A stretch of DNA of 64,000 bases from Octopus bimaculoides (lineage: Eukaryota): the NCBI RefSeq assembly GCF_001194135.2, contig NC_068998.1, positions 11,815,880 through 11,879,879 on the forward strand. The letters are read 5' to 3'. The notes under the pieces were generated by a model, which was not told the origin of the DNA, did not search any database, and was given only the letters and a program-made list of their open reading frames with translations. This document shows, one piece after another, positions 40,676 to 63,469 of this stretch (the stretch's first letter is position 1; every line of letters begins with the position of its first letter). The translations under genes and the position numbers were made by a program.

Positions 40676-43600
40676 TGTTGAAACACAGAGAGTCTTAATC
40701 TTTTACTGGCTTATAACCTGCCAGCTGAAATCAACATAGGATTATACAGAAAATAAAATGTATCCATGGTCGAAACATATCTAAGTTTATATATATATAT
40801 TGAATTTTATTCCAATATAATTGTATTGTATGCATTCTTATTTATGTCTTTCAAACACGGTGCATGTGTGTGTATGTGTGTACTGAAGGCTAGATTCAAC
40901 AAACAGTAATGGGATTAGGTGCTTGTAGCTATAAAAAAATTAAAAAATTTAAAAAAAAGTTTTCTAAACCTAACTTTAGATCAGTAAGTATTCCATGTGT
41001 TTGTGTTACACTAAGAAAATGAAACAATGAGAATGGAAGTAGAATCAAATTGATTGATATATCGATTATCAGAACAAAAATATTTTACAAAGCAGTCAAA
41101 TTTTAAGATATGTATGAGAATTAAAAATACCTGAGTTTATACACCAAGAAAACAGCTCCTAAATTTCACATGGATCAATTTAGCTGTACCATTCATGACG
41201 GAAATTTTAACTTGCTTTTTGCTTTTAACTCTTTAGCATTCAGATTTTTCTATCAAATGTAAAGCTTATTTATTCACATTATTTTGAATTAATTATGCAT
41301 TATCTCGTAGCTTTGAGAGTTCAATAATATGATCGTTGCATTTTTAGAATAACATTGTAGGAAAGGCATGAGAGATCAGATCTGGCTGGTTTGGACATAA
41401 AAGATAAAATATTTGGGCCAGATATGTCTGGTTGAAACACTAAAGGGTTAAAGCTATGTAAATACAAATTTCATACTGGCTGGTACCTATCAGAGCAATA
41501 CCTGTCATGTTTCAATTAGTGCAACTTATGCACAAATAAATATAGTAATTTCAGAGTAATTTGCTAATTAGAAACTAAGTAAATCATCCTGAAAAAGAAT
41601 CTTTCCTTAAAACAAAAATGACAGTCTAGTTTTAAACATTTCATGGAATTTCAACTATTATATACATATATATATTTACATGCACACACACACAGACACA
41701 CAGAAAACCAGCATGAAGAACTATTTACAATGATTAACATTTTATACTGTTAAATATTCACACCAGCTAATGTGTTTAAATATATGCACCAAACTTTATA
41801 TTGCTAAATACAACTGTTCCTTTACTTCTGATCTTTGAGAAAATTAACAGGACAAAATAATGTGGATCTATTGTGAAGTAGCAAATTATAAACTGATAAG
41901 ATTAAGAACTTCACTGAAACTATCTGAAGCTCTATTACATTCTAATTGAACTTCAGTGAACACTATTATAATAGTTAACCATTTCTAATCTTAAGCAACT
42001 GTATTCCAATTTAGACTTGTGCAAAAAAAATATTTAAAAAAACTCAACTAAATGCCCCAGTAAAATACTGAATTTGAAGCAAAACACATGTGCACACTTG
42101 ATGGGATATCTAGCATGTTTATTTTTTTTTTAAATAAGAGAGACAAACTTTCTGTAAATGATAATGTATAAAATATTGTTTTAATAAGCATCACTCACTG
42201 ATATTTTATGCTGTAAAAACAGCAATATAATAATGAAAAAAATATAGATTTTATCTTTTTGCTACTCTATTTCAATATATTTTAAAAATAAACAAGCATT
42301 AAGTAAAACTATTTTGTCATTATTAAACTGCTGTTTAGAATATAAATCAGCATGGAATTCTGATAAAAGGTTTTTAATTTAGGTTACTCTAAAACTGGAA
42401 GCTTGTACTGTAGGAACAAGGGTCGTCTCAGGCAGGTTTGGTATCAAAAGGATGAACTCTTTCGGAGTTTATGAAGAAGAAGTAAAAATAATCCCTTTTG
42501 TAAACACATTTCAAATAGCATTAAAGTAGATTAGCTCTTCCTGATATGAGTTATTCTGATAGACTTCAAAGAAGAACAAAATGAGTCTTAGACCAAATGG
42601 GAGGTAGGAAAGGAAACAAACTATTAACCACAAAATTTTGATTTGTAAAATAATGGAGAAAGAAATATCAGGTACTCACCGTACATATAGGACTCATAGA
42701 TACTTGGTTTTGGAGACGGATACTGCGGTGAATCTTGACGGTACTCATCTGGGCTAGGTGAGTAAACCTTCAAAAGAAAAAGAAATTTTTTTTTTTGAGT
42801 ATTGTAATTTAATGATTACCAGTAGTGTCTGTGGAAATTTCATGTAATATTGAAAACTAAAACAATGTCAACAATTTATAGAGATCCACAAAATACATTA
42901 TTTTCTTTTTTGTTTTTTTTTTTAAATGCATTTGTGTTTGGCTCTTGAAATGGTGTAAAATCCCGCATGGGTAGTACTTAAGAGAGAACATCTTTGGAAA
43001 CTATATTCTTTGTTATACACTTATTGTTTTTTTCTACCTTGTTACTAATTATTTTTATGTTTATGTCAAAAAGGAAAAAAATCTTAACTATGGAATGAAA
43101 CCGAAGCTGCTTTGCTACAGTATGACTATGTTAGTAAATCTTTAACCTGCACGATTTACTACATCATTTAGTTTCACATCAGATGAAAGTTCAAACATTT
43201 GGGTTTGAAGCCACAGTCCCAGTTTACAAAGTGCAGTAGTGCTTCACTGAACTATAGATTCTAGATAGAAAAACAAAAAAGTAATACACACATAATCACA
43301 TTCACATACATTGATAGAAATATACAGATCTGGAGAAAGACTGTAAACACATTATAAACACAAACATACACACACACATTTGTGCAATTGATGTAAATAT
43401 AGCCTTGCAAGTATATTTCTACTAGTTATACATGAAATCTGGAGAGAACATCCTTTCTGAGAATGCTTGCATATAACCAACCATGTGGTGTATGTATACA
43501 GACTCAACAGTAATTAGAGTATGAGAATGGATACTTTTTTTTAGATGTTTATAAACTGTTGGGTCTCTATACATATACAACATCCTGAGTAACACACACA

Positions 43601-45595
43601 CCCTAGTGTGAGAGGCCAGATATGACTAGTTTGAGCATAAAACAGGTAGAATATCCTGGCCGGATATAGCCAGTTTAAATGCTAAAGGGTTAAATGTTTT
43701 TATTAAATACAACAATCTGATTACAATAAATTACTATAATTATTATATGCACTATATCATTAATATAGAAGGTGGGTTGTAGAAGGTATAGGAGCTTAAC
43801 GAATTAATCAGCTTCAAGAAATTTCTAGACAATACCATTACAGAATCATTGAACCATTACCCCCTCAATAAGATGTTGGGGACATAGCATTAAGCATCTT
43901 GCTTAAGAAAGTAATATTATGTCTGCTATGAAAGCACAAAAAATCTTGGGAACCCAGAGGCCTGAAGCATCATCACCATCATCATCATCATCATCATGAC
44001 TACATTACACCTATAATACCACCACTGCTGTCTTATCAAAAGACAAAAATGGGTTTTTTGTAAAAAACTGAACAACACCAGTAGAATTTGGGAATGAGAT
44101 TTTAAAATGAAAACTTGGAAACTGATTAGTTTTTCTTCCAGGAGTAACTTTTAAGAGAAAAGAAGGAGTACATCCAAGAATAATACTCATAGATTTCTCT
44201 TGACTAGACACAACAGTATATTGCTTTATCAATCTCAAGGGATAATGAAAGACAAAGTTTACCCTAATGGGATTTGAAACTTGTGAGAAAAGGAGAAAAC
44301 TAAACACTACAAAACATTTTAGCCTTACATCCTATGACCTCAACCATTACCATATATTATGATGATGATGATGATGATGAGAAGAAGGAGGAGGTAGAGA
44401 TGATGTTCATGCCTTTCACAATAACATTAGCATAGTAAATGAAGCTACTCAAATAAGGAATTGAAACGAAGCCATCAGAAACTATTGCTACATTATGAGC
44501 CCACCATCACCACCACTACCATTATGAACAACTATAACAAAACAATAAGCCAAACAGATCCTCCATGTGGTCATTCAAACCTACTAGAAATAGCAGTTAA
44601 ATTTCCTTCAAATCACATCCTAAACAAAACAAAATGGAAGACATAAGATGATACACTGATCTTCCACCAAAAATAAAACTGGATAGTCATAGCTGGAATG
44701 TCATTTGGCTGAACTGACCTGGCATAAAACAATTGAATTGGAGGTATAAAACAAGAGCACAGTAATTAACGCTAATGCAATATATACATAATGGAGTAAA
44801 AATAAAATACACAATGACATCTTGTGAATTATATAAACAAAACAAAAAAAAGATTATACAAAAGACACTAAAACAAAAACAAAGAAATCACTTAAAAAAA
44901 CTGGTCCCTGATTTTAAAATGATAATGCCAATAAATTGCACTCAGTCATATTTGTAAAATTGACCAGATTATTTTAAAAGTTACTTTTTGTTTTTCATGA
45001 AAATTAAAAGTCATCTGCTTTTAAAAGTAACTCAAGGTAAAAGTTTTGTTTCAAGAAAGTTATTGAAACAAACTTGGCAAGATATTAATAAATATGAAGT
45101 AAAAGAGAAAAAAAACATAAGGAACAAGCATGAGCTATTTTTTGCATTGTATTGAAATTAAATTAAGCAGCTTTTTTAAACGAGCATTAAACTTTTTTTT
45201 TTAAGCTACTCAAAGATCTAACTTGGTAAAAATTGAGATAAAAAGAAAGTAACTTAAAATATCTTTTGTCATTATTTATAAATTTATTTCATTTTTCTCT
45301 CTGGCTTGGATTCCTAGCAACCATTTGTTCTCATAGAATGAAACTATGTCGTGGATTTAAATATATTAGGAGTAGGGAGAGAAAGGGAAAANNNNNNNNN
45401 NNNNNNNNNNNNNNNNNNNNNNNNNNNNNNNNNNNNNNNNNNNNNNNNNNNNNNNNNNNNNNNNNNNNNNNNNNNNNNNNNNNNNNNNNNNNNNNNNNNN
45501 NNNNNNNNNNNNNNNNNNNNNNNNNNNNNNNNNNNNNNNNNNNNNNNNNNNNNNNNNNNNNNNNNNNNNNNNNNNNNNNNNNNNNNNNNNNNNNN

Positions 45596-45630
<35 letters not shown>

Positions 45631-45814
45631 ACCAACACCACCAGTAGTAGTAAATTCCAACAGAGCCACAAGGCCACAAATTTAGAGGACAGTGTAATTA
45701 ATTAAATACAAATTGCTTCATTGACTTTATAAGGATGAAAGGCGATATGAAGCCCTACTGGGATTTAAATTCAGAATCTGTTCAGAGATCTACTGATTCT
45801 GTCATTCACAGCCC

Positions 45815-45867
<53 letters not shown>

Positions 45868-47634
45868 CCTTTCTACTATAGGCATAAGGCCTGAAATTTG
45901 GTGGGAGGGAATTAGTACTTATTTCACTGATCCCGAAAGGATGAAAAGCAAGGTTGACCCCCAGCGGAATTTGAACTCAGAACATAAAGATGGATGAAAT
46001 ATCGCTAAGCATTTCGCCCGACACGCTAACAATTCTGCCAGCTTGTTGCCTTAATAATAATAATAATGATGGTTTCAAATTTTGGCACAAAGCCAGTATT
46101 TTCATGGGAGGTACATCGATCCCATTACTCAACTGATACTTCTTTTATTGAGCTCAAGAGGATGAAAGGCAAATTCAACCTCAGCAAAATTTTTACTCAA
46201 GACTCAAAGACGGACAAATTACCGCTAAGCATTTTGCCCAGCATGCTAATGGTTCTGCTAGCTTGCCGCCTTATTATAATAACAATCCTTTCTACTATAG
46301 GCACAAAGCCTGCAATTTTGGGGGAGAGGACTAGTTGATTACATCGCCCCTAGTGTTTCCCTAGTACTTAATTTATTGACTCCAAAAGGATGAAAGGCAA
46401 AGTCGACCTTGGCAGAATTTGAACTCAAAACATAGTGACAGGTGAAATACCGATAAGCATTTTGTCCAGCATGCTAATGATTCTGGCAGCTCGCCACCTT
46501 CAATAATAATAATAATAATAATAACAGCAGCAATATCTAACTTTTATCATAACAACAATTTCTAACCAAGGCACAAGTGTATTTTTCATGAAGAGTATAA
46601 TCGATTAAGATCAACTGGTGCTTATTTCATCAGACACAGAAAGATCAGAGGCAAAGTCAATTCAGACTGAATTTGAACTCAGACTATTAAAAAAAATTAA
46701 AATAAAATAAAAGAAACTGAAAATACGAATAAAATTCTGGTTTATAAAATTAACTGAGCTCCATGTGTAATGCCGAAGGCCAATGCAAAAATATGAGTAG
46801 ATGAAAATAATCCTATGTGGTAAAAATATTCACTTGCGAGTTGTTTAATATAAAAAGCAAGAAATTAGTGTCAATAACTCCGAGTAAAATCCAATGTAGA
46901 TATCCAATATGTAAACTTAAGAGTAGGTCCAATGTGGAAATATTGAAGGTAAATTATACATCAAATCAAACTGGACATTAAAGCAGTTCACTAAAGTTCC
47001 ATGATGATGTAAATGAATATCCAATATAAGAGATAGTTAAAGAAAAAAACAGTCAGTCCTTTGGTGCTTAACTCCAAATAAATCCATGTAGCATCCAATG
47101 GAGATGGCCACAAGTAGAGAGGTCCAAGTCAGGTTCAATGAAGACAGAAGAAAGAAATTTGCAAAACCACATATATACACACTAAAGAAGGGTAAGCATT
47201 ATTAAATTGGTTTGTCTGAGTCTGTGTGTGTGTGTAAACATACAGAGAAAGAGAGAAAGAGAGATATTTAGTTATGAAGTAGATGAAAGTAGTCAATTAT
47301 ATTTACCAAATAAACAGCGGATATATAAATGACTTACTGTCTCAAGATAACATTGTATAACTTAAATTATATCATGAAACCACTACAATTAACTAACCAT
47401 ACTGCCTCAGAAAATAACATTATATAACTAATTAAATTGTAAACAAGCTAATTCCCAAGTTAGCTCCTGTTCCTTAATTTCATTAAGTTCAAAATAAAAT
47501 ATTATATAAGTGAAAACTAAATAAATCTAAACAGAAAATTTTTCAGTTAAAAAAAAAAAAGGTACTATACTTACATTTCCTTTGGGAGGGAGATACATAA
47601 GGGTTCTATAGAATGGATATGTTGTACAATACAT
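114..47634 (-). CDS. TCF12: E-protein (class I bHLH, daughterless/TCF3/TCF4/TCF12 co-ortholog). Span of predicted Alt-A isoform: 13 exons, 1788 nt, 595 aa. Canonical 5' exons lie outside the window.
   Basis: Hand-assembled join (minus): 47634-47575, 42767-42680, 39145-39000, 30615-30391, 26367-26289, 24749-24670, 16612-16373, 13443-13371, 12423-12267, 9027-8944, 7095-6950, 2973-2857, 406-114. All introns GT-AG, phases consistent, no internal stop. Symbol is nominal: invertebrates usually have one E-protein. Confidence 0.95.
536..900 (-). mobile_element. tRNA-derived SINE (tRNA-Arg-like head; octopus OR-type)
   Basis: Minus-strand head GGCGCAATGGCCCAGTGGTTAGGGCAGTGGACTCGCGG...GGTTTCGATTCC with A and B boxes; (CAA)n tail. 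Confidence 0.8.
1131..1345 (+). mobile_element. SINE family B (head GGCGAGCTGGCAGAA; core gagttcaaatt..gactttgcctttcatcctttcggggtcgataaa)
   Basis: More than 15 diverged copies recognisable in the window. Confidence 0.8.
2857..2973 (-). CDS. TCF12: E-protein C-domain exon (E|[39 protein letters not shown])
   Basis: Invariant E-protein motif [17 protein letters not shown]; acceptor tgtgtttag|AA; donor G|gtaagg; 117 nt, phase 1-1. Confidence 0.97.
4930..6070 (+). mobile_element. Decayed hAT-superfamily transposase (ZMYM1-like type), frameshifted
   Basis: Fragments [13 protein letters not shown] (RW motif), [26 protein letters not shown] (C-terminal dimerisation domain) and [17 protein letters not shown]; multiple stops. 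Confidence 0.75.
6950..7095 (-). CDS. TCF12: HLH exon (R|[48 protein letters not shown])
   Basis: Class I HLH sequence; acceptor ttttgttatacag|G; donor G|gtaggg; phase 2-1. Confidence 0.98.
8603..8712. repeat. Three-copy 33-36 bp tandem repeat with 8 E-boxes
   Basis: Unit aaaCAGCTGtctgcaagaaCAGTTGggcaagtt. CAGCTG at 8606, 8639, 8675; CAGTTG at 8622, 8658, 8691; CATGTG 8699; CAGATG 8707. Confidence 0.9.
8944..9027 (-). CDS. TCF12: Basic-region exon (S|[28 protein letters not shown])
   Basis: E-protein basic region (R..ANNARER); tandem acceptor ttttcaaTAG CAG (starts 9027 or 9024); donor AG|gtattg; 84 nt, phase 2-2. Confidence 0.96.
11543..11924. mobile_element. Degenerate foldback/MITE-like element with 67-bp inverted arms
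   Basis: Arms 11543-11609 and 11858-11924 align ungapped with 12 mismatches out of 67. Confidence 0.75.
11955..12170 (+). mobile_element. SINE family B copy
   Basis: Shares the core and tail with 1131-1345. Confidence 0.75.
12267..12423 (-). CDS. TCF12: E-protein exon (A|[19 protein letters not shown]...PPSKRA)
   Basis: Acceptor ttttttttctctag; donor AG|gtaagt; 157 nt open, phase 1-2; IKVE and PSKRA motifs like the pre-bHLH region of E-proteins. Confidence 0.9.
13371..13443 (-). CDS. TCF12: E-protein exon ([24 protein letters not shown]|A)
   Basis: Acceptor tttctattttatttcag; donor G|gtttgt; 73 nt, phase 0-1, exactly bridges the exons at 16373 and 12423. Confidence 0.85.
14123..14902. mobile_element. 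Two TTAA-MITE copies in inverted orientation
   Basis: 14123-14350 (+) and 14701-14902 (-) share tttatttattcac.ttgttttgaat.aat and aacataaaacagg segments. Confidence 0.7.
16373..16612 (-). CDS. TCF12: AD2-region exon ([21 protein letters not shown]...AHMDSHM)
   Basis: Conserved ERLDDAI.VLRNHA motif; acceptor ttttctccaaacag; donor ATG|gtgaga; 240 nt, phase 0-0. Confidence 0.96.
18116..18344 (+). mobile_element. Second TTAA-flanked MITE family
   Basis: TTAAcccctt ... aaatggTTAA, 229 bp; partial related sequence near 9770-9830. Confidence 0.55.
19010..19260 (+). mobile_element. SINE with tRNA head and CORE-like segment
   Basis: ggctatgtgataagaagtttgcttcccaaccacatggttccagg...gtgtcttctactacag; related copies at about 16930, 25610, 32865, 36260 (+) and 4330 (-). 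Confidence 0.7.
19720..20010 (+). mobile_element. RTE-clade LINE 3' fragment, decayed
   Basis: Degenerate W.G.V.R...RG.P.K.W pattern ending in the gcatggaaaa tail shared with SINE family C. Confidence 0.5.
20854..21146. other. Assembly gap; other gaps at 497-506, 31165-31375, 45392-45595 and 54685-54694
   Basis: Runs of N. Confidence 1.
21815..22000 (-). mobile_element. SINE family C 3' part, young copy
   Basis: catcatcatcgtttaacgtccgctttccatgctagcatgggttggacgatttgac... shared with other copies. Confidence 0.8.
24159..24220. repeat. 31-bp tandem duplication
   Basis: ttcattccccatgaagcatatatacctcata twice, 2 mismatches. Confidence 0.85.
24670..24749 (-). CDS. TCF12: E-protein exon (G|[26 protein letters not shown])
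   Basis: Resembles the vertebrate W.R...SP.Y...LHSL exon; acceptor ttactatttcag; donor TTA|gtaagt; phase 1-0. Confidence 0.92.
26289..26367 (-). CDS. TCF12: E-protein exon ([26 protein letters not shown]|G)
   Basis: Conserved [16 protein letters not shown]; acceptor ttttctgttttctag; donor G|gtaaaa; phase 0-1. Confidence 0.95.
26500..27650 (-). mobile_element. Cluster of about 5 family B SINE copies separated by (TAA)n/(TGA)n
   Basis: Repeated ggatgaaaggcaaagt.gacc..g.ggaatttgaactcag motif at about 26545, 26770, 27125, 27340 and 27540. Confidence 0.8.
26922..27099. mobile_element. hAT/Charlie-type MITE inserted within the SINE cluster
   Basis: TIRs cagtggtactcaacct / aggttgggaaccactg; 8-bp target-site duplication gacttgta / gactagta. 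Confidence 0.85.
28720..29110 (-). mobile_element. RTE-clade LINE 3' fragment, decayed
   Basis: Minus strand reads [15 protein letters not shown] and ends in the family C tail. Confidence 0.55.
30391..30615 (-). CDS. TCF12: E-protein exon ([24 protein letters not shown]...[12 protein letters not shown])
   Basis: LPPMSTF and QTGD.LGKALAS motifs; acceptor tttattttttag; donor TCT|gtaagt; 225 nt, phase 0-0. Confidence 0.96.
31931..31995. repeat. Perfect 30-bp inverted repeat with 5-nt loop
   Basis: aattaaaaatttcttgtgattttgttgatt-gcttt-aatcaacaaaatcacaagaaatttttaatt, checked base by base. Confidence 0.97.
33440..33820 (-). mobile_element. SINE family C 3' part (ggaagggcatccagctgtagaa core, RTE-like tail, (GAT)n)
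   Basis: Near-identical to 21815-22000 and 11400-11517; further copies at about 10615, 12530, 13020, 17440, 17640, 21250 and 62150. Confidence 0.8.
34330..35590 (+). repeat. Cluster of a ~150-bp interspersed repeat (family D) within an old tandem duplication
   Basis: Recurrent gtttag.cccagg, ggcattccagc..tgacca and gctgctatttctagca; other copies near 44640 (-), 49490 (-) and 61880 (+). Confidence 0.65.
39000..39145 (-). CDS. TCF12: E-protein exon (D|[16 protein letters not shown]...HHTHDM)
   Basis: SSDPW motif; acceptor tttctttctcttgacag; donor ATG|gtaagt; phase 1-0. Confidence 0.93.
41225..41451 (+). mobile_element. TTAA-flanked piggyBac-like MITE (full length, 227 bp)
   Basis: TTAActctttagcatt ... 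cactaaagggTTAA; related copies at 14123-14350, 14701-14902 (inverted), 43605-43692 and 58940-59122. Confidence 0.75.
42680..42767 (-). CDS. TCF12: First shared exon ([29 protein letters not shown]|D)
   Basis: Homologous to the vertebrate VYAPS..D..R.SP.YPS.KP exon; acceptor ttttcttttgaag; donor G|gtgagt; phase 0-1. Confidence 0.95.
45660..46690 (-). mobile_element. Head-to-tail array of 5 family B SINEs linked by (TAA)n
   Basis: Copies at about 45660-45815, 45868-46051, 46069-46272, 46285-46500 and 46560-46690. Confidence 0.85.
45816..45867. repeat. (TAA)n microsatellite; many other (TA)n, (CA)n, (GA)n and (CAT)n tracts in the window
   Basis: Read directly; other examples at 15006-15040, 18035-18065, 31376-31424, 34965-35017 and 63270-63343. 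Confidence 0.95.
47575..47634 (-). CDS. TCF12: Alternative first coding exon Alt-A ([20 protein letters not shown])
   Basis: acaATG start with an in-frame TGA upstream; 20 codons; donor AAT|gtaagt, phase 0; MYC..YP...LMY pattern resembles HEBAlt/TCF4-A. Confidence 0.85.
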
Positions 47635-49718
47635 TGTAACTAGTTTCAAAAAATGAGAGAAAGTGAATGAACCAAAAACTCTTCAGCTGGTCATTAGATC
47701 CAAAGTGAACGAATTAGACCAATATATATTCAGAGACATTGAGAACCTAGCTACAAGTGACCACTCACAGCTATAATCCATTAGTTAGGAGAGAAAGAAC
47801 TTTTCCAATTAATTCACATTATTATGAAGTAACTTTCAGAAACTAATCATTGCTGTTGTTGTTGATGATAATGATGGGAGATGAGAGACGATAATGAGTG
47901 TAGTAAACCTTGGTATCAATTATCTGCTTAGCTGTTTGAAAGAATAGTAAAAAGCCTTCATGAATGGACAGGTATTCCTTTTAGTATGAGACGCCAAGAT
48001 TATTAGGCCAATGTGGGAAACAAGCTAAACTAAGAGTAGAGGTTCAGGCAGCATAAGCTGAAATAACATCTTTGTCTGGTAGTAGAAGTTGGTTTCTTAA
48101 AATTCAGCAGCAGCAGCACACATGGTATCACCAGCACAAGCCAGTCTATTCACAGACTTGCAGTAGTAGGATTTAAACTAGGTTAAGAATGTGATTTGTG
48201 TCAACTTACAAACTAGATTATTGCATACTGTGTTGATTCTAGAGAGAAGGGATAATTTGACAAAAAAGAAAAAAATAATAATCTACATCAGTAATAAGTT
48301 AGGGTACATCTCTCTTTTTCTCTCTCTCTATTTCAAGAACAGTTATTAATAGTTTAAAAACATTAAGTTTTGCAATGGGTTTATTATATTTGTAGTTCAA
48401 CCCAAGTGTGTGTGTGTATATGTGTTCACACATGCTCACACAAACACAACATAAATAGTGTTAAGGGGGGAAAAAAAGGATAAAAAACAAGACAAATCTA
48501 ACACTTGCTAAATGAAAGATTTTAAATAAGGATTTTTAAATAAAAATAATAATAATAATAATAGTAACTTGATAGAAGAAATTGTTTTTTTTCCCTCCCT
48601 TTGAATTAGAACTAAATTAATTAGACTTGAGCAAAAGACATTTAAAAATACAAGAAAAAAAGCTAGAATTATGACAAATCCTTACTTTTATATAAAAATT
48701 TTTTTTTAAATGGAAGGAAAAGTCATTTTATGAAATATTAATAAAGTGTTGTGGGTATGAAGTGGGGGTGGGACAGGATTAAAGCCTAAAGCATACAGAA
48801 ACTTTATTTTTAATGTCAGTAAAACCTGGCATTTAAGTATAAAATTATTTTAACTCTATATTTTCAAATATGAATGCATAGAGGAACAATTTAGGAAAAG
48901 TTATTAATTCTTTTTTTGACAGACAAAACAACTACGTTTTTATTTTATATACAGAAGGAGAGGGTGTGGCCATCAATACTCTACCAATATTAAATTATAA
49001 TAGGTGAATTGTGTGTTAAGGAGAGAGAGAGAGACAAGAGATGGAGCTTGGGGTGTATAGGACTTGGTCAAAGCAAAAAAGAAAGGAAAAGGAAAAATTG
49101 GGTCAAAAGTATTTTTACGGAAAAGTAGCAGCATTTCCCTCAATGGTTTAGAATCATGAACTAAATTTCATCAAGAATCAACAGCAAAATTGGGGGAAAA
49201 AAATATACATATTGCTTTTTTTTTATATATATATTTCCACACAATAAAATAGTTATTCATTAATAATAGCAAACAGCTAATGCTGTCAGAATTAATTAAA
49301 TAAAAAGAATTATCCAAAAATATAAAACTGTTTATTTCATTGTGTGTGTGCGTGTGTCAGTTATTTAGGTGGCTTTGAAGAATATGCTGTCACATAATGA
49401 ATATATAAAAAACAAAAAAGGCAAATGTTTTTTGTTGTTTAATAGTAAAGATGGCAACACTTTTTCCAAACAGAACAAAGGAATCTCTGAGATTACACAG
49501 TCTGCTAGAAATAGCCACCAAATCTCCCTCAAATCACATACAACTGGTGGGGTACACGTATTCTCAAAAAGAAATGACAGGATGAGCCTGGCTTGAATAT
49601 CTTTGATCACTGGTTTACTCTTTGAGATCCAACTAAGAACTAAACAACAACATATATGGAAGGTAGAAAAAGGGATTATTAATTATGAATGATACACACA
49701 CACACACACAAACACACA

Positions 49719-49943
49719 TGGTTGGCCAAAAGTCACCTGATGGTAAATCAAAACCATTTAATTCCAAGATTTATTTATTTATGTTTAACAACTGAATGAA
49801 TTTAATAAAACATCTAAATATGAAACATCATAAAAATTGTTCAAACTAAAGTCCTTCTTGAGCGACACATTTCCCCATTCGGGTCAATACAGAATTACAG
49901 AGTATTTATGTAACTTTGATTTACTATGTGGTGACTTTTGGCC

Positions 49944-49946
<3 letters not shown>
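49719..49946 (-). mobile_element. Tc1/mariner-derived MITE
   Basis: Perfect 17-bp TIR gttggccaaaagtcacc (49721-49737 / 49930-49946); internal minus-strand TRMGKCVAQEG.*FEQ resembles a transposase C-terminus. Confidence 0.8.
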
Positions 49947-49988
<42 letters not shown>

Positions 49989-51809
49989 TATATATATATA
50001 CATACATACACACACTAGCTGACACAAAATGTAGATATTCATTTAATTATAAGCTCTCACACAATCAAGAACTCAGTTTGTTTACATTTCATCTTATTTA
50101 ATTACATTCATTTACTTCCAAAGTTTTCTAGCTGTTTTTTAAAGAACTGTTATCACTCCTAAGAAAACCATCATTGGAATAGAGATGTTTTTTCCCTTTT
50201 CGGGGGGGGGGGTTGCCTATAAGATCATTCACACACACAAACACTCACACATGTGTGCATGCACACACACACAGGCACAATGTATTGCTATGTTCTATAT
50301 TCTCCCTTTCCTTATTTCTTTCACACAGACTTTTGTCATGACTCAAATTAATTCTTAATTAGTTATGGAGCATACTCAGTGAAAAAATACTGTGTCTAGC
50401 TGAATTAAAATATGCTCTATGAAGTACATGTGTGTATTTTACACACACATTCACACAGGCACGTGTGTAAATACAGACACACACATACATGTATACACAT
50501 GCAAGTATCATTTTAATAATTAAACTATAAAGTAATTTCCTCAATAAATAATAGCTAATTAACTTCTAAACATGACCAAGCTAATAAACAAATAAAGACG
50601 ATTCAATTATCTGGTTAATGTATTAAGTTTAGAAAGCTCAAATCAAAATATTTATTGATGAAACTCAGGGTATTTGAAATCTTTAGCATGCAGACAGGAA
50701 GTTTATATGGGGAAGTAGAAGAGAGAAGCCAGAGAAAAGGGTAGAGGGATCTAAGACATGCCCCACTCCCAAACATGTTCCTATTAGCATGGCAGGCCCG
50801 AATGGTCAGAATATAATTGATAAAACACATTGACTAGAAAGAGAATAATCTATTTATTGCTAGGGTTTGTAGGGATAATTTTTTTTTTCATTCTAAACAA
50901 ATATAAATTTCTAAAATTATAAAAAAATAACAGTATTTTTCAATAAAATGGATCCAGGAGATTTTATCTAGTGAGTTGAGACATATCTAATGAACTAATA
51001 AAAAGATTAGATTAGTTAATAATATGGCTTCAACAAATCAGCAGGAAATAGATATAAAAAGTTAACTCTAAGAAAAGTGAGAATTCTATAAAATATATAA
51101 ACCTATGCCAAAATATTTACTCTTTTAGACTACCAGCAGAATATAAGATCCATCCATATTATAAATATATATTTGTATATGTATTTATTATATACAGTAA
51201 TTAGAAGCCTCATTAAAGTCTTAATCATAGTCTGGTAAAAAAAAAAAAGAAAGGTAAAATAAAATCATGAAATAATAAAGTCAATATAAATAAAACAAAC
51301 TTTTTTCTCCTAAGATTTTTAATTTCTTGAGAAGGAATAGGTTCAAAGATTTGGGCATCTTTCAAATATTAAAACTGTTGAACAGAATTATAAAGAATTA
51401 TACTTTATCAAAAAGCAGAGGAAGCTAATTAAGGGACAAATTTTACTAAAGTACATTGTGATTATGCCCATGTGTTATAATCCTGTTAAAACATCAGAAT
51501 TGGAAATAAAGTGGTATAAGATTTTAAAACTTTAGCAGAAGCTGTTGAACCACATAAAATAATTAAGTGCTAGATAGTATTTAACTATTTCTATTTAATT
51601 GTTAGTTTTAAAAACTAGAAGGAAAACAAATAATATGCCCTTTATTTTTTTTATTGTTGAGACAAATTTCCTTGGTTCTATTCTGAGAAAGAGAGCAGAA
51701 CAAAAAAAAATGATAGTAGTCAGTCATGCTATAGTTGTGAGACCCAGTAAACAATAAACAAACAAACATATAGAAAACATTTAGACAGTAAGCATGAAAT
51801 GAAGCACAC

Positions 51810-51839
51810 CTGTAACTTGGGTCTGGAGTAGTAGTACAT
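51810..51839 (-). CDS. TCF12: Candidate alternative first coding exon Alt-B (MYYYSRPKLQ)
   Basis: ATG with an in-frame TAA upstream; donor CAG|gtgtgc, phase 0; MYYY matches the Alt-domain core; CT-rich tract (minus strand) just upstream. Confidence 0.65.
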
Positions 51840-51937
51840 TGGCACCAAATGTGCAATGTCAGACAGCTGCAACCCACTCTGTCCTTAAATCAAGCACTGC
51901 TGCTACAGTTAAATTGCCAGCAAAGGAGATATAGGTA

Positions 51938-52098
51938 AGAGAGAGTGAGAGAGAAAGAGAAAGAGAGAGTGAGGGGGAAGAGGGAGGAGAGAGAGAGAAA
52001 GAGGGAGAGTGTTGGAGCATAAGAATGAGTTAGTGGTGGTAAGAGGGAGAGTGAGAAAATGAGTGAGAGTCAGTGGGAGGGGGAAGGAGAGAAGAGAT
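51938..52098 (-). promoter_or_regulatory. Imperfect GA/CT-rich tract upstream of Alt-B (promoter/5'UTR-like)
   Basis: About 160 bp near-pure purine tract on the plus strand, about 100 bp upstream of the Alt-B ATG. Function inferred. Confidence 0.35.
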
Positions 52099-54109
52099 AA
52101 CATCTAGTAAAAGTTAATAGTCATCACACACAGTTTTAAAGACAACGATATATTCCCATGAATATGAGAATTCCAAAATCTAAGTATCATCAGCAGATTC
52201 TGAAGGTTTGGTCCAATTTCAACCACAGTAGGTAACAACCAACTTGACACAGATGTTTAGCAACACACCAGAAGCAAACTTCAGTCAAGACACTCACAGT
52301 AGAACAAAAATAATACCCATAAAAAGTCTTTCCTAATTATGTAAATAAATCTCAGGAAACATTTAAAGTTGAAATTATAAACCTTATTATAAAGTAGTGA
52401 AATAAAACAGTATAGGAATATAAGAAAATAAGTTATCCTATTCATAAGGGTGTGAATTCAAACAACCACATACACAAATGAATACAACAAAGTTGAAATA
52501 TTTTAAGATAGTCCTTTAGAGTGAGTAAAAATGGATTAGAGAACTTATGAACATATGTGGCAGAAAGCAACTGAAGCTGAACACCCCTAAATGAAATTGG
52601 GATTTCCCTGAGTGAAATATGAGCTAGGTGTAAAGTTAAGTGCTAACAGAGAGTTTGGTCTATGATTGAGACCATATGGAAAAGCTGAAGTGAGAAATCT
52701 ATTCAGAGATACATATTCTAAAAGAGAATAGCAGCAATCAAGAGAGAAGGGAACAGATATTAATAAAGAAGAAAAAAAAGCATAGAAGAAAATCAAATGC
52801 TTTTAATTTTTAATATTAATTTAAAGAAAGAAATTAAATTTCATAAAATTAACAACAAAATCTGAAGTAAATTTTTTTTGTTTTTAAATGAAAACTTTTA
52901 TTTAGTAGTAAATATATTTTAAAAAGTGGAATATATTTGCAGCTAAGTTATTTATCTTCTATCAAAAGTATTAATATTTCATGTTATTATTTTATCTGGG
53001 AAAAAAGAAAAGTTCCAGCAGTGTAGACAGATCTCCTGCTGTGTGAATGAAGTCTTATAGTATTTATAAAACCAAGTTTCATACTATGCTACTGTTCCAG
53101 CTAGTTAAGTCTGATACAGTTTAGGACCTGGAGATCACCCCTCCTCCATTGCTATGTTATGCCACATTAAAAGCAATAAGATAATAGGCATTGTTTACTA
53201 CTAAAAGCTATTTTCAAAATTTAATTACCCATGGCACAGTTTCAGACTATAGCAAAAGATATTAGTGTTTTGAATTCTTCTATAGTAACCTAACAACCAC
53301 ACTAATAAACATCCAAATAATTTAATGTTTTGGTTGCAAAGTTTTCAAATTCATTATAGTGTGATATCCTACAAAATTAAGAACATATTTAATGTTTACC
53401 ATTCTGTTGGACATAACTAAAGACAGCAATTTATTTTATTATTTAGTCTATGGTTACATCCTATAGAAACAAATTTACAGATTAGTAAAGGCTAATTAGA
53501 AATAATAATCTAATATTTTGTGATAGCAATTAGGCTATATTTAAAAAGAAAATCCTTTCCTAGTAATACTTCAAATCAAAATGTTAAAAATTCCCCTCAC
53601 TCTTTTAAAACTTCACCCAAGCAATTCACGTGTAGGGACACATGACCAGTCTAAGTCTTGTAATTAATGGATAATCCTGAACTAGTTTACTAAGTTATAG
53701 TTTATTCACTTGAAATGCATCATGCTTTGGGTCTCCTTGTGCCTTACAAAGACCAATTTTCAATCATATCCTCAACAGAGTAACTTTTATTTTATTGTTT
53801 TTATACGAATATATATAAATACATACATTTCTCACCAGTTGTTTTGTAATAAGAGAGAAAATATATATAAAGTTGCTTTTTCACAGTAAAATACTTCATT
53901 CTATACCAGTACTACAACATTTAAAGCCCAAGTTTAATATATAACTTTGATATGATCTGTAAAGCTTTATTCTTTCATGTTTAAAGTTTTTTCATCTAAA
54001 AACTATTTTCCTTTAATCATAAAAATTACTAATGAGTTCTTAACAATTCTAACTTACAAACAGCAATTGAAAAATCTTAAAAATAAATATACATAAAAAC
54101 ATCAACATA

Positions 54110-54430
54110 GAAGTTGCTGGAATGCAACTGTCCATGTTCAAAGGACTTGCCATTTATATATAACATGTTTAACAGATATTATCTGGAAAATAAAAATCTG
54201 AAATGGCTTTTCACTGGACATGCGTTTAGAAGAAAGGACAATAGATGGAATACCAAATTATATAACAGAGAGAAGACCATGTCCAGGAAAAAAGAAGGAG
54301 GGAAAGACCATGCAAAGTTGGAATGAAAACTTTGTTAAATTCTTTGGCACTCAAACATGGATGAGGTAAACATCAGACCGTGGTTGATGGAGAGAACATA
54401 CTGAGGTGGACTGAACAAGTGCAAGGATGA
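54110..54430 (+). mobile_element. RTE-clade LINE ORF2 C-terminal fragment
   Basis: KWLFTGHAFRRKDNRWNTKL matches the W..AGH..R..D.RWT motif. Confidence 0.6.
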
Positions 54431-57400
54431 TATATATATATATATATATATATATATCCATTTTCACACCAATTACTTTTTAATGTGAGAAAAAAATATA
54501 AGAAAGGAATTAGCTACTTGACATGATTTAAAATTCAGTACTGTAAGGTTTGACAGGATTTGAAAGATAACTTCAGTTTAACAATAACTTTTGGTTCATA
54601 AGTTTTCTTCCTTTGTGGCATTTGAAAATCTCTTTTCCTTCAAGGTTAAAACCATTTTAAACATCTAACAACTTTTAACTTACTNNNNNNNNNNCACACA
54701 AAATAAAATAAGAATTTAGGGGGAAAAATAACCCTTCAATAAGAAATACTGCAGAGATTTGTCGAAAAATAAAACTGCTATCCTTATAGATATTAGAGTC
54801 TTCTTGCAACACATCAGAAATGTGGCTCTCAAAATCATGGGCAGAGATGTCAGAGCTAAGAGTGAATGTGGCCACCTGGATATTTAAAACTGGGGCCTAG
54901 GTGGGCTGAAAAAAGGATGTGGGGATATGTTGGTATATTGTGAAGATGGAGCATGATTGGATTGAAGAGGACATGAAGTAGTTGATAAAATCTAGGACAC
55001 GTAAACTGCTGGAAATCCGAAGCTAAAAACAGTACCATAAATTTGCCATAAAATGCATGTTTGTTTGGAAAATCAAATCATTGAAAATGAAAAGTATATA
55101 TTCACCCCTTCAGTTTATAGTAATCTTGTAGTAAAACAACCCAGTTGGTCAACAGGGAGCTAAGACACCTACCAGAATAAACTGAATTATATAATGTTAA
55201 ACAATAAAGTAACATTTTCATGAATCTGTCACTCCAAATCTTTACTCTCCTCTTTGCTATAGACATTACTTAAATATGCATTCATACAAGCACACTGGAG
55301 AGCTGAGATGTGCCTAAGATTGGAGTATTTGTATTATTTCATAATTGGTAGTAATGAACTATCTTACTTTAAATATTCATTGCTATCATACATTTTAAAA
55401 GTCACATATCTAATCATTATTTCAACACCTAATGTTCGTATTTTATTAGCACCATCAATATCATTTGATGCAATGTAACTCAAAATGAATAATATAGATA
55501 TAAACTTTTAAAAAATATCTTAAAACAATGTATACATCAATTCAAGTTAGTATATACCTTGTTGATAGCAAATACGCAAAATATTGAAAAAACAACACGC
55601 TGTGTAACGCAAGGGAGATAACTAATGATCTACGAAGGCACAGATTATCTTTTCTTGAAACATGCTGTTAAAAACTCGGCATTTAGCATTAGTTACAGTT
55701 GATAGTAATTTGAATAAGGAGAAGGGATAGTTTATTTTTTTAGTTTAAACACCATATTTCGATCGATATTTTTGAAATTGGAGAAAAGCGTAAAAATAAG
55801 GTTGATTTACAATTGTGTTAGAAGGAATCAATCGCCGTTCTATAAACAATAACATGTCAATTCATTTTCACAAGATGTTCCTTCTTGTTCGTGTGTGGCA
55901 CACGATGCGACACTCAACGCATTTTGCCTTAGTTTACTGCCATCTGACAAGATGGCATCAAAACGGTTTCTAATTTAGACATAAAGCAAGCAATTCTGAG
56001 AGGAACTTTCTTAGACACAAAGTTAGCAATTCTGAGGGGTTAGTCGACACCATCGACCCCAATACTAGACTGGTATGTTATTTTATCGACCCTGGAGGGT
56101 TGAAAGGTTAAGTTGATCACAGCAAGATTTAATGAGAACAAATACTGTAACTTTTTAAAACTTTCTTTGGATTTATATTTTAAAATACAATTGTAATTAC
56201 AATGTAGATAAGAGACATATAAATAGGTCTTTCTAAAAATTCGTATTTAACTGTAAAGGCAAGCTTTCAATAAATTTAAATCAACAAAAATATAATCCAA
56301 TATAATGATTTGTACTTCTTTCTGAAGGACTTAAGCATCCCACCCACACCACCGACCCTGGGTATAGCAACAATGCTACTGCTGCAGCTATCAATTTTTA
56401 CCCAGCCATTATACTTCAGAGTATTTTAATAATATTTTAGGAGTTTAATCCAAACCCTACAAAATGACATTAATAAAAATTGATGTATTTTAAACATAGC
56501 AAATCAAAGTTCACTTTCAATCAGACATATATATTCCTTGGGTGACCAACGGATGACCAAGATTTAACAGGATTGTTTCTGCTGCTATGTTCAACATCTC
56601 TTATACCTGTGCATACTTAAAAAAAAAAATACAAAGCCAACTTGAAGAGGAAATTGATTGAATCAGCATAATGTACACAGCAATAAAAAGCATTGGATCA
56701 ATTGTTATAAATGATCAAGAAATATAAACAATGCAATGAAAACTATGATTGGAAATGGGACCCCCTTAGCACTCCATGTGATTAGTGTGAAAGAATATCA
56801 GTTTTAATCTAATACTGTCATTTCAGTATTAGGGATTAGATGTCTATAAGCATTATAAACCAGAGGAGTTGATTTAATGTAGAGTCCAACAAAGTAAAGC
56901 ATTTGACAAGTGCTGTATTGTATAGTGAGGTGTGGTGAAAAAGGCAGGAATTAAATATGGATGAATGACTTATCAAAGGAAGTTATAAATTCAGGTGTGG
57001 GAAATATATATAAAAATTAAAAAAAATAAGAAAAAAAGGCAATCTGAGGTTATTATTTTCATACAGAGGAATTCAAAATCTATGTGGGTCCAATTCTGGG
57101 CATGTTAATTGTAATCCAACTACTTAAAAGTGTCACAACAGAATTCAAGGCTCGAGTGTTATTGAGGGTGTCTGTAAAACATTAAGATGACCTAATTTGT
57201 GAATAGAATCAGTGGAATTTAGAAACAGAGTGTGGAATTAAAAGGATTAAAGGCTCAGTGGTATGTAGATATGGTTAAAGAAAGCTCAGCTAGACACTAG
57301 TAAAAGCAACCATTAAATAAGGAAAAGTGATACACTTAAAAATTGATACTACTATCACCTCTATAGCCCACAACTTATTCTAAAATAAATATTACGGCTT

Positions 57401-60062
57401 TTAACAGTAATAGAATTTAATATCTAACTTTGGCATGATGCCAACTTTGGGAGGAGTACAGCGAACTGAATCAATTGCACTAGTACGTATTTTATCAATT
57501 ACAGAACGATGAAAGTTGTAGTTGATCCCAATGGGATTTGAACTCATAATGTTGAACCTAACTACGAACACTGTTAGGCATTTTGTCCAATATCTTAATG
57601 TTTCTGCCAATACACCACTGCAATGACAATGATGACAATGATTCTTTAAATGGTACTTATGGTCTACATAACAATGAAAGGTAAAGCTGATTAAGAGGAT
57701 CTAAAGAAATGAAACTGTATAACCATAAAGCATTTAATCAAACTTTCTACTATTTATGTTCTTCATTGCATTTGTAATAAAAAATGGTGATGACAACAAC
57801 AGGTTCGCCATCAGATCTTTGACACGAAAAATGGGGAGGGGGAGGATGAAAAGAATGATATCCATGATTTTCTCCACAATTTTTAACAATATAAAGATTT
57901 ATCAAGGGATTACCACCTTATAGTGAGCAAACAGGTTGAAAGGACTTAATGAATAGGTCTCATAATCACAATACAAGATAGATATTTCAGCATTGGACAC
58001 TGTGAAAATATCTGAAATGAATGAAATAGCAATCATCTAGGTTGTGGGTGCGCACATCAATATGAAATTAACTGCAAATAATAAGTTATTATAATCTGAA
58101 AACTAACTGATATATGCTATGGTCAACAGAGAGAAATAGCCAACAATCAAAAGTGTTACTCTCAAAAAAAAAAAATTAAAAATACACACATGCTAGTGTT
58201 CCTGCTACAGTGAAAAAACTTACTCCACAGAAGAGAATTTACCCAATTAATCAAATTTCATAACTCCAAAATTCTGTCCTATCAGAAAATACATGTATCT
58301 TAAAAAATTATACATTCTGCATGCTTTTAATAAAGATAATATGTTTATGCTGCTCTATGCAGAGCATGTGTGTACACTGGGGAAAAACTCAGTGCAAAAG
58401 GATGAGTTATTGTTGTGATGGCTGCAGTTAGTATATGACTTAAGGGAAAAAGAAAATAAGTTAAACCACAGTGATGGATCTTGGCAAAAATAATTCTTCA
58501 CATTATATTAATCCTTTTCTGCTTAAACTCCACTGAAAATCTATCAGATATAACCTGAAGTTATCTCTTTCAATATGATTAGCATTAGAAAATAGATGGG
58601 AGAGTCACAAATGGCTGAATGGATAAGACATAAGAAAACCCAGAACATGGCTGGTTGTTTGTAATGTTATACACAGGTGCAATGTGACAAAAGCTGAATC
58701 CCAGGTTTACCTGGCTGTCAATCCCAACAAAACAGCAAAAAATTTTACTGTTGTGAGTAGCAGCAGGAACAGCAAGCAAAACTTGATGAAATGCTCCATT
58801 GGTATAGCATGAAATGTAGTAAAGCTACTTGATATGGATGAACATTCATTGATAGTAGCTATCTCTGATCTGAATAAGTCAAGTAAGACTGACAACAGAA
58901 TCATTGCAGGAAGTAGCACATTTGAACATTCTACACTGTTTAACACTTTAGCATTCGGATTACACTATCAAATGTAATGTTCATTTATTAATCATAACAG
59001 TATCTCGTAGCTTTGGGATTTCAATGATGTGGTTTTTTAAAATTTTTTAGTAGGACTTTATATAGGGTAGTTGGAACATAGAACGGAAAGAATATTTGGG
59101 TCGGTTTAAATGTTAAAGGATTATATACATAAGAGCATAACAGTATACACGCATGCACAAAACAGAGACAACAGCAACATACCAGTGCTGCTGCATTACA
59201 GAAAATATTGAAAATTACTATTATTATTATTTTAATCAGCTCAAATCCTTATGCCAGTGAAGAAGCAGTATATTTCATTTAGTAAAACCCAGTACATTAC
59301 AGGTACTTAATTCACCGAAGCTAGAGAGATAATTTTGTTGAGAATAAAATTGTGTCGAGGTATTTCCAGTCATGAAATACTACTCACTAAAAAGACAGAG
59401 CTGTTAATCCAATTTAAAATGAAGACTTGAAGCAGAGATAGGAAGGAAAAGTATTTTCAGTTATAGAATACCAGGCTCGTTCATGCTGACTGAGGGGCTG
59501 GTGAATAAACTCATGTAATTCATGATGGAAGATGATGATACCATAAAGGAAACTCCATACAAACTAGTTAATGCAATAATGCTAAACTAATACATCCTTT
59601 ACGATAAACTACAATATAGAGGGGGAGGAGAAATTATTATATGAGTAATACGAGTTTTGCACAACATAATGGTAATTAATAAACTATAATTAAAAGTACA
59701 TTTTTAGATTATCCATTATAACTACCATTTTTCAGGTAATACTAATTTTAATAATGCGAAAAATACAAATTGGGTTGAAAAACAGGAACACACACACACA
59801 CACACAGAAGTTGTCTATAAACAAATCAAGTAACATGATCAAAAGTCTGAATATAGCCAAATAATACTGATTAGGAGAAAGAATTAATTGTCTGACCTGT
59901 GTAATACAAAAAGAGAGTTTAAAATAATAAATACACAGTAGAACTGTAACTTCTTTTAAACATTTGGTTAAGTACAACGAACAAATATTAAAGGCACATA
60001 TTAAAGACCTATACCTTTTTCACATTGATTTATGAGGAGAGGAGAAGAAGAAATAAACTTAC

Positions 60063-60104
60063 CTCATGGTAAAATTGTAATGGCTTTAGCTCAATATAAT
60101 CCAT
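60063..60104 (-). CDS. TCF12: Candidate alternative first coding exon Alt-C (MDYIELKPLQFYHE)
   Basis: ATGG start with an in-frame TGA upstream; consensus donor GAG|gtaagt, phase 0; possible acceptor tttctgttag at 60131; no recognised homology. Confidence 0.45.
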
Positions 60105-60826
60105 TGAAAAGAATTGTTTACAACAAACTTCTAACAGAAAATCATAAGTTCAAGCTTATTTTAGAGAATATATCAACCAAAGAGCATTGCAGCCAAAAAG
60201 AAATGTATTGTTACTTTACACTATCATTGCATATGCTTTAGCTCCAATACACAGCAAGTGAGTATTACATAGTTGAAGTTAAATCTTAATCAAAGCAAAC
60301 AGAATATATATTACAAAGAATGAAATGCTTTCACATCCTTACAGTTGCTCCTTCCAACAGAAAGTAAATACTGTAGAAAAGAAGATCCCAAATAACAGCT
60401 ATTTCACTGTCACTTCCTATCATTGAATGGAAATGAGGTGTTCTTTACAAACATTCTATTTCTGAAGCCAGGAAGTCTTTAAGACTATCCATTATAATAT
60501 AAAGGTCATTTAAACTATTGATTGAACTATTTCTAATAGCAACATCTACTTCAAGTGAGTTCATGACACAATTAGAGAGAGAGACTACCTGAAACTACTG
60601 AAGAATAGGAGGGAAAGAAAATATTAAAACAAAAAAAAAGTAAAAATAAGCAAACAAAAGTCAACTATTTAAAAAAATATATATACTATTTCATTATGAA
60701 TTAGAAAATATCTAATTGAAATAATGCATGGAATAATTGTTAAATAACACACATACACACACAAATACATGCATGAAAAAAAAAAAAAATCTTTTATCAG
60801 TTAGAAAATAATGTTCAATAAAATTG

Positions 60827-60905
60827 TAGCCAGCTGTTGCATTTTGTTAAATTTTATAAAGAGCAGTAAATGGGAACGGCACAGCTGAGGCTTGCTTCAT
60901 TGGCT
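60827..60905 (-). promoter_or_regulatory. Candidate Pol II core promoter (CCAAT + TATA + E-boxes)
   Basis: Minus strand: AGCCAATGA with CCAAT at 60903-60899, CAGCTG 60887-60882, TATAAAA 60858-60852, CAGCTG 60836-60831, CT-A initiator-like site at 60827. Spacing is about -75/-31/+1. Confidence 0.45.
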
Positions 60906-62090: not shown

Positions 62091-62124
<34 letters not shown>

Positions 62125-62979: not shown

Positions 62980-63245
62980 AGACACATGCCTTAGTGGTTA
63001 GGGTCTTGCACACACGATTGCGAGATCATGGGTTGTTCAATTCCCAGACCGGGTGTTGCGTTCTTGAGCAAAGCACTTCATTTCACATAGCTCTGTGATC
63101 ATTTTGACATCTGATATGTGGCACCTGTACAGGTAATGTCGATCTGACGGAGGGAATGAGCTTATGTCTACACAAACATTTGATCGCTATAAACAAATCT
63201 TCTGTGTGGTTGTTCGATAAGAAATTGTCGAACCTTCATAAATCA
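62980..63245 (+). mobile_element. Related tRNA-derived SINE, diverged
   Basis: Head gccttagtggttagggt...ttcaattcccagaccggg resembles the head of the 536-900 element. Confidence 0.65.
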
Positions 63246-63269
63246 TCTAACGACAGGAGTGTCCATCAT

Positions 63270-63345
<76 letters not shown>

Positions 63346-63469
63346 GAAAATGGATGAAAAACGATAGCTATATATATATCCATATTAGTACATACACACA
63401 GACATAAATATAGGAATGCATATTGTACCAAAAGTAATGCAAAAGTGGGAATACTCTTATTTTTAACAG

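Follow-up and report, generated by a model that had tools for sequence, protein, structure and literature searches.

Proneural, myogenic and haematopoietic basic helix-loop-helix (bHLH) factors depend on E-proteins as obligate partners. In the sea urchin, a single E-protein gene (SpE-protein) is reportedly expressed in canonical and Alt forms (Schrankel et al. 2016, Dev Biol 416:149). In vertebrate HEB and E2-2, the Alt form uses a separate start site beside a unique exon of ~23 residues, which joins the VYAPS exon (PMC3346973). The Tyr-rich vertebrate Alt domain replaces AD1, and its YYY motif controls activity (PMC9385190). In human TCF4, three mutually exclusive 5′ exons (10a-10c) precede exon 10 and give the isoforms TCF4-A, -H and -I. 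Exons 8-9, which sit immediately ahead of exon 10, encode the bipartite nuclear localisation signal (NLS); the three short isoforms lack this signal and AD1, keep AD2 and the bHLH, enter the nucleus via partners and activate less than the full-length, AD1-bearing TCF4-B isoforms. Many 5′ exons of human TCF4 either are non-coding or supply differing N-termini (Sepp et al. 2011, PMC3137626). Here, we analysed a stretch of 64,000 nucleotides (nt) of the Octopus bimaculoides genome (contig NC_068998.1, positions 11,815,880 to 11,879,879; hereafter the window, with positions counted from its first letter), whose minus strand carries what homology identifies as a class I bHLH E-protein gene orthologous to TCF4/TCF12/TCF3 and daughterless. 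An original prediction, made from the letters of the window, had placed in this gene three short ATG-bearing exons with phase-0 GT donors, at 47575-47634 (c1), 51810-51839 (c2) and 60063-60104 (c3), that would converge on the acceptor at 42767 as a bank of alternative N-termini. The exons were found as described, and RNA junctions connect all three of them to that acceptor.

The octopus locus resembles exons 10a-10c of TCF4 in having three first exons before one homologous internal exon, and the parallel with the 5′ complexity of human TCF4 that had been drawn beforehand proved apt and closer than claimed. The two systems differ in that only c1 matches a vertebrate exon (the MYCAY… exon of Alt/TCF4-A type), c2 and c3 being unlikely counterparts of any of the TCF4 exons 10a-10c, and in that use of the alternative exons was minor in the octopus runs seen. 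The layout with several exons at the Alt position is an RNA-supported case of a known, TCF4-like arrangement and involves no new mechanism.

Three exons spliced onto one acceptor

The shared acceptor exon (E2) reads ttttcttttgaag/GTT TAC TCA at 42767, in phase 0 (slashes mark exon boundaries throughout), corresponds by homology to the VYAPS exon of vertebrates and is matched by a TCF4-A probe in tblastn; that vertebrate Alt exons join this homologous exon, as had been stated, was confirmed. The three upstream exons are real and all are spliced GT-AG onto acceptor 42767, each in at least two independent RNA runs (c1 in X1 and X21, c2 in X1 and X22, c3 in X1, X25 and X26). The X1 sequences are Logan contigs, and most of the support derives from such contigs in runs whose type is a guess ('RNA?'); the junction reads for c1 in X21 and for c2 in X22 are raw paired Illumina RNA reads. 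For c1, an X1 contig of 446 nt (depth 343) spans 47573-47987 and runs into the acceptor exon; its joint, reported as 42765>47573 (CT..AC, with a 2-nt ambiguity), corresponds to 47575>42767 with GT..AG on the minus strand, and the same joint is present in two raw reads of X21. For c2, an X1 contig (depth 111) spans 51808-51875 and continues into the acceptor exon, and three raw X22 reads carry …GTAAAC/CTGTAACTTGGGTCTGGAGTAGTAGTACATTG, that is, c2 joined to the acceptor exon. For c3, the contigs of X1 (739 nt, depth 38.5, 60061-60774), X25 and X26 end their match at 60061 and continue for 25-28 nt into ACGGTACTCATCTGGGCTAGGTGAGTAA, which reverse-complements to the opening 28 nt of the acceptor exon; this junction thus has the support of three runs from two studies. 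The contig depths of c1, c2 and c3 exceed the intronic background (about 2.4) by factors of 15-150.

On the minus strand, the ATG of each exon follows an in-frame stop (TGA at 47685 for c1, TAA at 51887 for c2 and TGA at 60152 for c3) with no ATG between, and the frame then reaches a phase-0 GT donor. Candidates defined in this way (an ATG after an in-frame stop, 10-20 codons and a phase-0 GT) number 102 on the minus and 93 on the plus strand of 42768-64000, where order-1 Markov simulations gave an expectation of 81±10; with the donor narrowed to GTRAGT, two were observed (c1 and c3) against 0.72 expected, with P(≥2) = 0.16. The sequence pattern alone is not above chance, and it is RNA and homology that decide. 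By that evidence, c1, c2 and c3 are three alternative 5′ exons sharing one next internal exon, each a unique exon in the intron that is spliced in frame onto the VY(A/S)PS exon and skips AD1.

The canonical junction was read off the loose end (reverse complement) of raw reads at the acceptor as …AATTCACAAAAACGAAGGAAAAGTGGTTCA/GTTTAC, encoding NSQKRRKSGS/VY (18 reads in X21 and 15 in X22), and its peptide agrees with the 'transcription factor 4-like' protein of Argonauta hians (…NSQKRRKSGSVYSPSP). The canonical exon ending in …NSQKRRKSGS was not found within the window; the intron 5′ of 42767 must accordingly exceed 21 kb, and all three candidates lie in it. In the canonical Argonauta protein (P0001), LSDLLDFSAMF of AD1 lies about 160 residues before VYSPSP, and the forms that begin at the short exons bypass this N-terminus. 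Beside the depths given above, the X1 unitig of the shared exon had a depth of 2476, and the node composed of this exon plus CT had a depth of 152.5, about the sum of c2, c3 and unspliced RNA. The resulting shares in X1 are roughly 80% for the canonical form, 14% for c1, 4.5% for c2 and 1.6% for c3, values that are approximate, as contig depth in one run is a rough measure of expression.

The 5′ boundary of c2 could be placed directly. The match of X1 contigs stops at 51906 and 51898 and gives way to CCCCAACCCTGCGACTTCATTGC; in reverse complement this is GCAATGAAGTCGCAGGGTTGGGG, the 5′ primer of the PacBio Iso-Seq workflow. These positions are thus cDNA 5′ ends, and c2 is a first exon. Because the X1 Logan contigs retain this primer, contig ends of this run can be read as 5′-end tags, which could be of use at other loci. 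c1 and c3 are likely to be first exons as well, each being covered by long contigs with no upstream joint. The c1 contig reaches at least 353 nt 5′ of the ATG without a joint, contains six short upstream open reading frames and bears no 5′ tag. The junction reads and capped 5′ ends to which the original prediction had tied its proposal were found in part: junctions for all three exons, and cDNA 5′ ends for c2.

The Alt exon c1 and its homologs

An exhaustive HMMER search with the N-terminus of the c1 isoform (173 residues) retrieved the E-proteins of many animals; nothing useful came of word-indexed protein searches that used the N-termini of the c1 and c2 isoforms. The protein KAK2186930.1 of the annelid Ridgeia piscesae begins MDTLDARKQAMFCTTYPYYRHLVYMPGKLGA/VYSPNP, the Alt peptide taking the form MFCTTYPYYRHLVYMPGKLGA/VYSPNP. 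When this annelid Alt N-terminus was searched back by tblastn, it matched the window at 47634-47581, starting at the ATG of c1, with 67% identity and an E value of 5.8e-9, far above every other match in the window. The vertebrate Alt peptide of HEBAlt type (MYCAYPVPGMG.NSLMYYYNGKT/VYAPS) also aligns with c1; that of TCF4-A type reads MYCAYTIPGMTGSSLMYYYNGKA/VYAPSAS, and a scallop model has the c1-like sequence …DPYYRVYRPYPNMYPPLGLCRPTKV/VYPPQSP. The pattern of the Alt domain, MYC(A/T)…Y…(S/T)LMY…K, was found in c1 alone. Like HEBAlt and E2-2Alt, c1 begins with MYC, contains (S/T)LMY, carries a K near its end and joins the next exon in the same phase; it differs in being 20 residues long and in having LMYLPP (in the context LMYLPPKGN) in place of the phosphorylated YYY of vertebrates, a motif that the annelid and scallop Alt peptides also lack and that in octopus stands on the separate exon c2.

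A distant cephalopod-like locus (L001/L002; genomic contig ctg116342l of ENA ERZ21867824) provided a second comparison. Its shared exon (17491-17577 of L002) is conserved and 78.5% identical in DNA to that of octopus, whereas the Argonauta exon peptide is identical, so that L002 is more distant than Argonauta. When window positions 64000-38900 were compared with L002, three islands alone could be aligned, corresponding to c1, E2 and the next constitutive exon, E3. The orthologue of c1 in L001/L002 is 95% identical in amino acids and keeps the donor gtaagt; in L002, the exon has 84% DNA identity over 82 nt, and its codons differ from those of octopus by seven synonymous and one nonsynonymous change. 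Because change is biased toward synonymous sites and the peptide is homologous to Alt exons, c1 is identified as the orthologue of the ancient Alt exon and as a coding exon, presumably translated, under strong purifying selection in cephalopods. Among the three exons, it is the only one that these comparisons support as a conserved coding N-terminus. With regard to spacing, E2 and E3 are 2.1 kb apart in L002 and 3.5 kb apart in octopus, and c1 and c2 are 10.6 kb and 4.2 kb apart, respectively. The gene calls on this contig of L001/L002 use genetic code 4 (TGA read as Trp), and the recorded 'proteins' are open reading frames that read through intron and exon.

Alternative N-termini on the VYSP exon are also present in other lophotrochozoan models (Ridgeia KAK2186930.1, Mizuhopecten XP_021366278.1, Tubulanus XP_074661186.1 and 'isoform X9' of Elysia marginata), those of Ridgeia and the scallop carrying the c1-like peptide, and several N-terminal isoforms are already on record in the NCBI models of scallop, nemertean and Elysia. 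These entries are automatic models with neither RNA-junction nor 5′-end support, and some model N-termini (…PLQ/VYSP in Lottia and …MFQ/VYSP in Elysia crispata) look like read-through of the acceptor's pyrimidine tract. A separate peculiarity of P0004, P0005 and P0007, from scallop and other lophotrochozoans, is the presence of two tandem basic-region segments (…RRQANNARE…RRQANN.RERVRVRD…), which look like mutually exclusive E12/E47-like exons that the predictor has kept together; the octopus window has a single such basic-region exon (9035-8943).

The first exons c2 and c3

The c2 exon is 89-97 nt long, with a leader of 59-67 nt that contains no upstream ATG, and a TATAT element lies 23-27 nt upstream of 51906. 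The two strands of the 64 kb contain a single ATG with three Tyr codons directly behind it, and it lies exactly at c2; this coincidence with the motif of vertebrate Alt is notable but statistically thin. The match of vertebrate MYYY to c2 has an E value of 0.14, which is not significant alone, and the c2 peptide showed no significant homology; its frame sits on a TAC/TAT microsatellite. Two apparent counterparts, YMYRRCPLQ/VYSPGG of Lottia and MISPSPYPPMFQ/VYSPGP of Elysia crispata, were rejected as c2 homologues, since each closes with a pyrimidine tract and CAG, the ending to be expected when a gene predictor reads through the acceptor. The ENA open reading frames P0037 and P0059 display a similar …LLQ/…VFQ/VYSP pattern.

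In L002, a c2-like island lies at 528-568, 10.6 kb upstream of c1, and reads …tactactactactactctctgcagCCAGGTTACAG/GTGTGCCTC, as compared with …atgtactactactccagaCCCAAGTTACAG/GTGTGCTTC in octopus. The island has 83% identity over 41 nt, with an E value of 8.7e-5 for a 231-nt query, which becomes about 0.01 after scaling for the entire length of the intron. Both the donor and the final 20 bases of the exon are kept, and a block farther 5′, TTGCAGCT.GT..AC, matches too. The exon and donor of c2 are probably old on this comparison, whereas its MYYY frame, which L002 does not conserve, looks lineage-specific. The cross-species conservation named at the outset as a check is therefore present for the amino acids and donor of c1 and probably for the donor of c2, while the c2 frame is absent. 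With c2 probably predating Octopus and the alternative forms minor in X1, the proposal that octopus itself had expanded the Alt slot was not supported. On the upstream side of the c2-like island, L002 covers 527 nt, and a c3 orthologue would lie beyond its end.

Among relatives of octopus, organisms E, I and J have no change listed in the 30-nt open reading frame of c2, a comparison of low power. In the c2 leader, an A>T difference at 51876 shows T in X47, X57, X56 (organism B) and X58 (organism I) and in about half of X1; T is the commoner base, so the assembly holds the rarer allele.

The c3 contig of X1 breaks at a T-run (60775-60789), and in another species the transcribed stretch extends to about 60994. 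In organism B, the match of an RNA contig likewise ends at 60061 and 28 more bases follow, as in the spliced contigs of X25 and X26, and organisms E and F have contigs of the c3 leader; use of c3 is probably shared among close relatives. The c3 peptide had no homologue, and use of its ATG appears doubtful. Organism B lacks 14 nt of the c3 leader (60131-60144) and has 13 other differences over 567 nt; its 42-nt c3 open reading frame is unchanged, over too few sites to be meaningful.

Locus layout and reading of the alternative exons

The identification of the gene as an E-protein, proposed beforehand, was upheld by window exons encoding the E-protein bHLH, the conserved tail and the AD2-region motif, and the N-terminal region is 93% identical to Argonauta 'transcription factor 4-like' (Table 1). 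Both assembly gaps within the long intron (runs of N) lie at least 1,980 nt from the nearest exon edge. The reading frame is set by the mRNA junctions and not by the DNA across the gaps, which therefore cannot break it; and since the junctions bridge both gaps in cis and in the correct orientation, they support the order and orientation of the scaffold, while being silent on true intron lengths. A search of 42000-64000 against Rfam gave no match. High-copy intronic repeats were found at 45806-46591, 49474-50240, 61732-62189 and 62648-63563, and also at 42901 and 44501, with an RNA word depth in X1 of up to about 50,000-75,000 and many 'opposite strands' joints (e.g. 42901<>44501, about 1,400 reads in X21); they resemble expressed inverted-repeat or transposon copies together with CA/TA microsatellites.

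Table 1. Exons, predicted peptides and assembly gaps of the octopus E-protein locus (window coordinates; a dot marks features without strand).
Feature	Position	Strand	Observation
c3 exon	60063-60774 (leader to at least 60774)	-	open reading frame 60104-60063 MDYIELKPLQFYHE, donor GAG/GTAAGT
Assembly gap	54685-54694	.	intronic, between c3 and c2; bridged by c3 junction
c2 exon	51810-51906	-	open reading frame 51839-51810 MYYYSRPKLQ, donor CAG/GTGTGC
c1 exon	47575-47987 (leader to at least 47987)	-	open reading frame 47634-47575, 20 residues, donor AAT/GTAAGT
Predicted N-terminal peptides of c2 and c3 products	initiation at 51839 and 60104	-	(Ac-)MYYYSRPKLQVYSPSP… and MDYIELKPLQFYHEVYSP…, respectively
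Assembly gap	45392-45595	.	intronic, between c1 and acceptor; bridged by RNA junctions
E2, shared acceptor exon	42767-42680	-	phase-0 acceptor; 29 residues + 1 nt, then G/gtgagt
E3, next constitutive exon, …HTHDM	39145-39000	-	loose end at 42680 matches 39145-39125; conserved in L002
E-protein exon, …GLPPMSTFR…	30615-30391	-	E-protein match
E-protein exon	about 16612	-	AD2-region motif
bHLH, split over two exons	9035-8943 + 7097-6942	-	E-protein match
E-protein exon	2974-	-	conserved tail motif

Taken together, our findings very probably describe an octopus E-protein gene with a canonical promoter beyond the window and at least three internal first exons spliced to the acceptor at 42767. The mRNAs starting at c1, c2 or c3 would encode E-proteins that lack the canonical N-terminus and AD1 with its LDFS motif and, by homology, would also lack the nuclear localisation signal (KRRK) that directly precedes the junction, while the downstream activation and bHLH exons would be kept. 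The 20-residue Tyr-rich peptide of c1 would provide the ancient Alt N-terminus. As a second first exon, close to a TATA element and with a short leader free of ATGs, c2 would add MYYYSRPKLQ in Octopus; as this frame looks lineage-specific, the conserved role of c2 is more likely that of a promoter and leader. c3 would act as a third, weaker first exon, in which upstream ATGs make use of its own ATG doubtful. By homology, the amounts of AD1-less and NLS-less forms would be set by separate promoters. The junctions, the 5′ ends of c2, the conservation of c1 and the relative abundances are observed directly; we infer the translation of c2 and c3, the loss of the NLS and the separate regulation of the promoters.

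Several points weigh against this reading. The alternative forms make up a small share, and expression is poorly gauged by contig depth. The probable first-exon status of c1 and c3 depends on long contigs without an upstream joint. No contig or read connects any of the alternative first exons to the bHLH exons, and full-length isoforms are assumed; the N-termini themselves are predictions from sequence and RNA. At c2, the phase-0 open segment of L002 has no ATG and the Tyr frame there is in phase 2, and in the Octopus-like organisms E, I and J the contigs over c2 are unspliced and of low depth. Finally, the c3 leader is at least 670 nt long and contains 17 upstream ATGs.

Many of these points bear on how much of the proposed bank of alternative N-termini can be upheld: c1, with its conservation and annelid match, stands; c2, whose frame is not found in L002, is plausible but lineage-specific; and c3, with its upstream ATGs and lack of a homologue, is doubtful. 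We judge it nearly an even matter, leaning slightly to the negative, that only c1 is a functional alternative N-terminus and that c2 and c3 are alternative or cryptic promoters with accidental open reading frames. It is likewise quite possible, if a little short of an even chance, that translation of the c2 and c3 transcripts begins at a Met farther downstream, such as the one in …ESYMYD (shared exon), or that these transcripts have a regulatory role or yield little protein. About 100 candidates combining an ATG, an open frame and a GT occur by chance, the c2 frame coincides with a TAC repeat, both exons have low shares of the depth, and the human TCF4 gene has many 5′ exons that are non-coding or varied in the N-termini they give. 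Against such a reduction to c1, the ATG of c2, behind its short leader, is the first that a scanning ribosome would meet; its ATG-Tyr3 sequence, unique in the 64 kb, reproduces the functional YYY motif of vertebrate Alt; and c3 is spliced in each of three runs and, probably, in a sister species too.

A relationship between c2 and Alt would account for the motif differently. An ancestral Alt exon (MYC…LMYYY..K) might have been duplicated or split, with c1 keeping MYC…YPFYR and c2 keeping the YYY phospho-switch, a derivation that we consider unlikely; that two differently regulated Alt proteins would have resulted from it is equally improbable. Its appeal is that MYYYSRPK of c2 resembles LMYYYNGK, the last third of vertebrate Alt and the part needed for activity, where c1 has no YYY, and that this singular ATG-Tyr3 stands on an exon and donor that are probably old. 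The similarity of c2 to Alt, however, amounts to 4-5 residues, c1 and c2 have no nucleotide similarity, the Tyr run is a microsatellite that in L002 lacks an ATG and lies out of frame, and the Alt peptides of annelid and scallop likewise have no YYY. A related scenario, in which two ancient internal promoters persist at the Alt position in cephalopods and Octopus has made the second, c2, coding, supplying the YYY switch that c1 lacks and yielding two separately regulated, signal-responsive AD1-less E-proteins as a convergent or split Alt, would also be a long shot. That the junctions are artefacts (assembly chimeras, template switching or genomic contamination) is scarcely credible: most support does come from Logan contigs of runs typed by guess, and unspliced low-depth contigs also cross the donors, but the GT-AG boundaries are exact and share one acceptor, raw Illumina reads contain the c1 and c2 junctions, c3 recurs in three runs of two studies, the depths far exceed the intronic background, and c1 is conserved like a coding exon.

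The preferred reading, an E-protein gene with a distal canonical promoter and at least three internal first exons, has consequences beyond this locus. AD1-less Alt forms alter the activation strength and localisation of bHLH dimers, and the presence of a recognisable Alt exon in annelid and scallop places the switch between Alt and canonical forms firmly in lophotrochozoans. The multiplicity of promoters at the Alt intron, in octopus as in human TCF4, suggests an old or recurrent tuning of E-protein dosage and form, and exon-specific probes are gained for studies of octopus neurogenesis.

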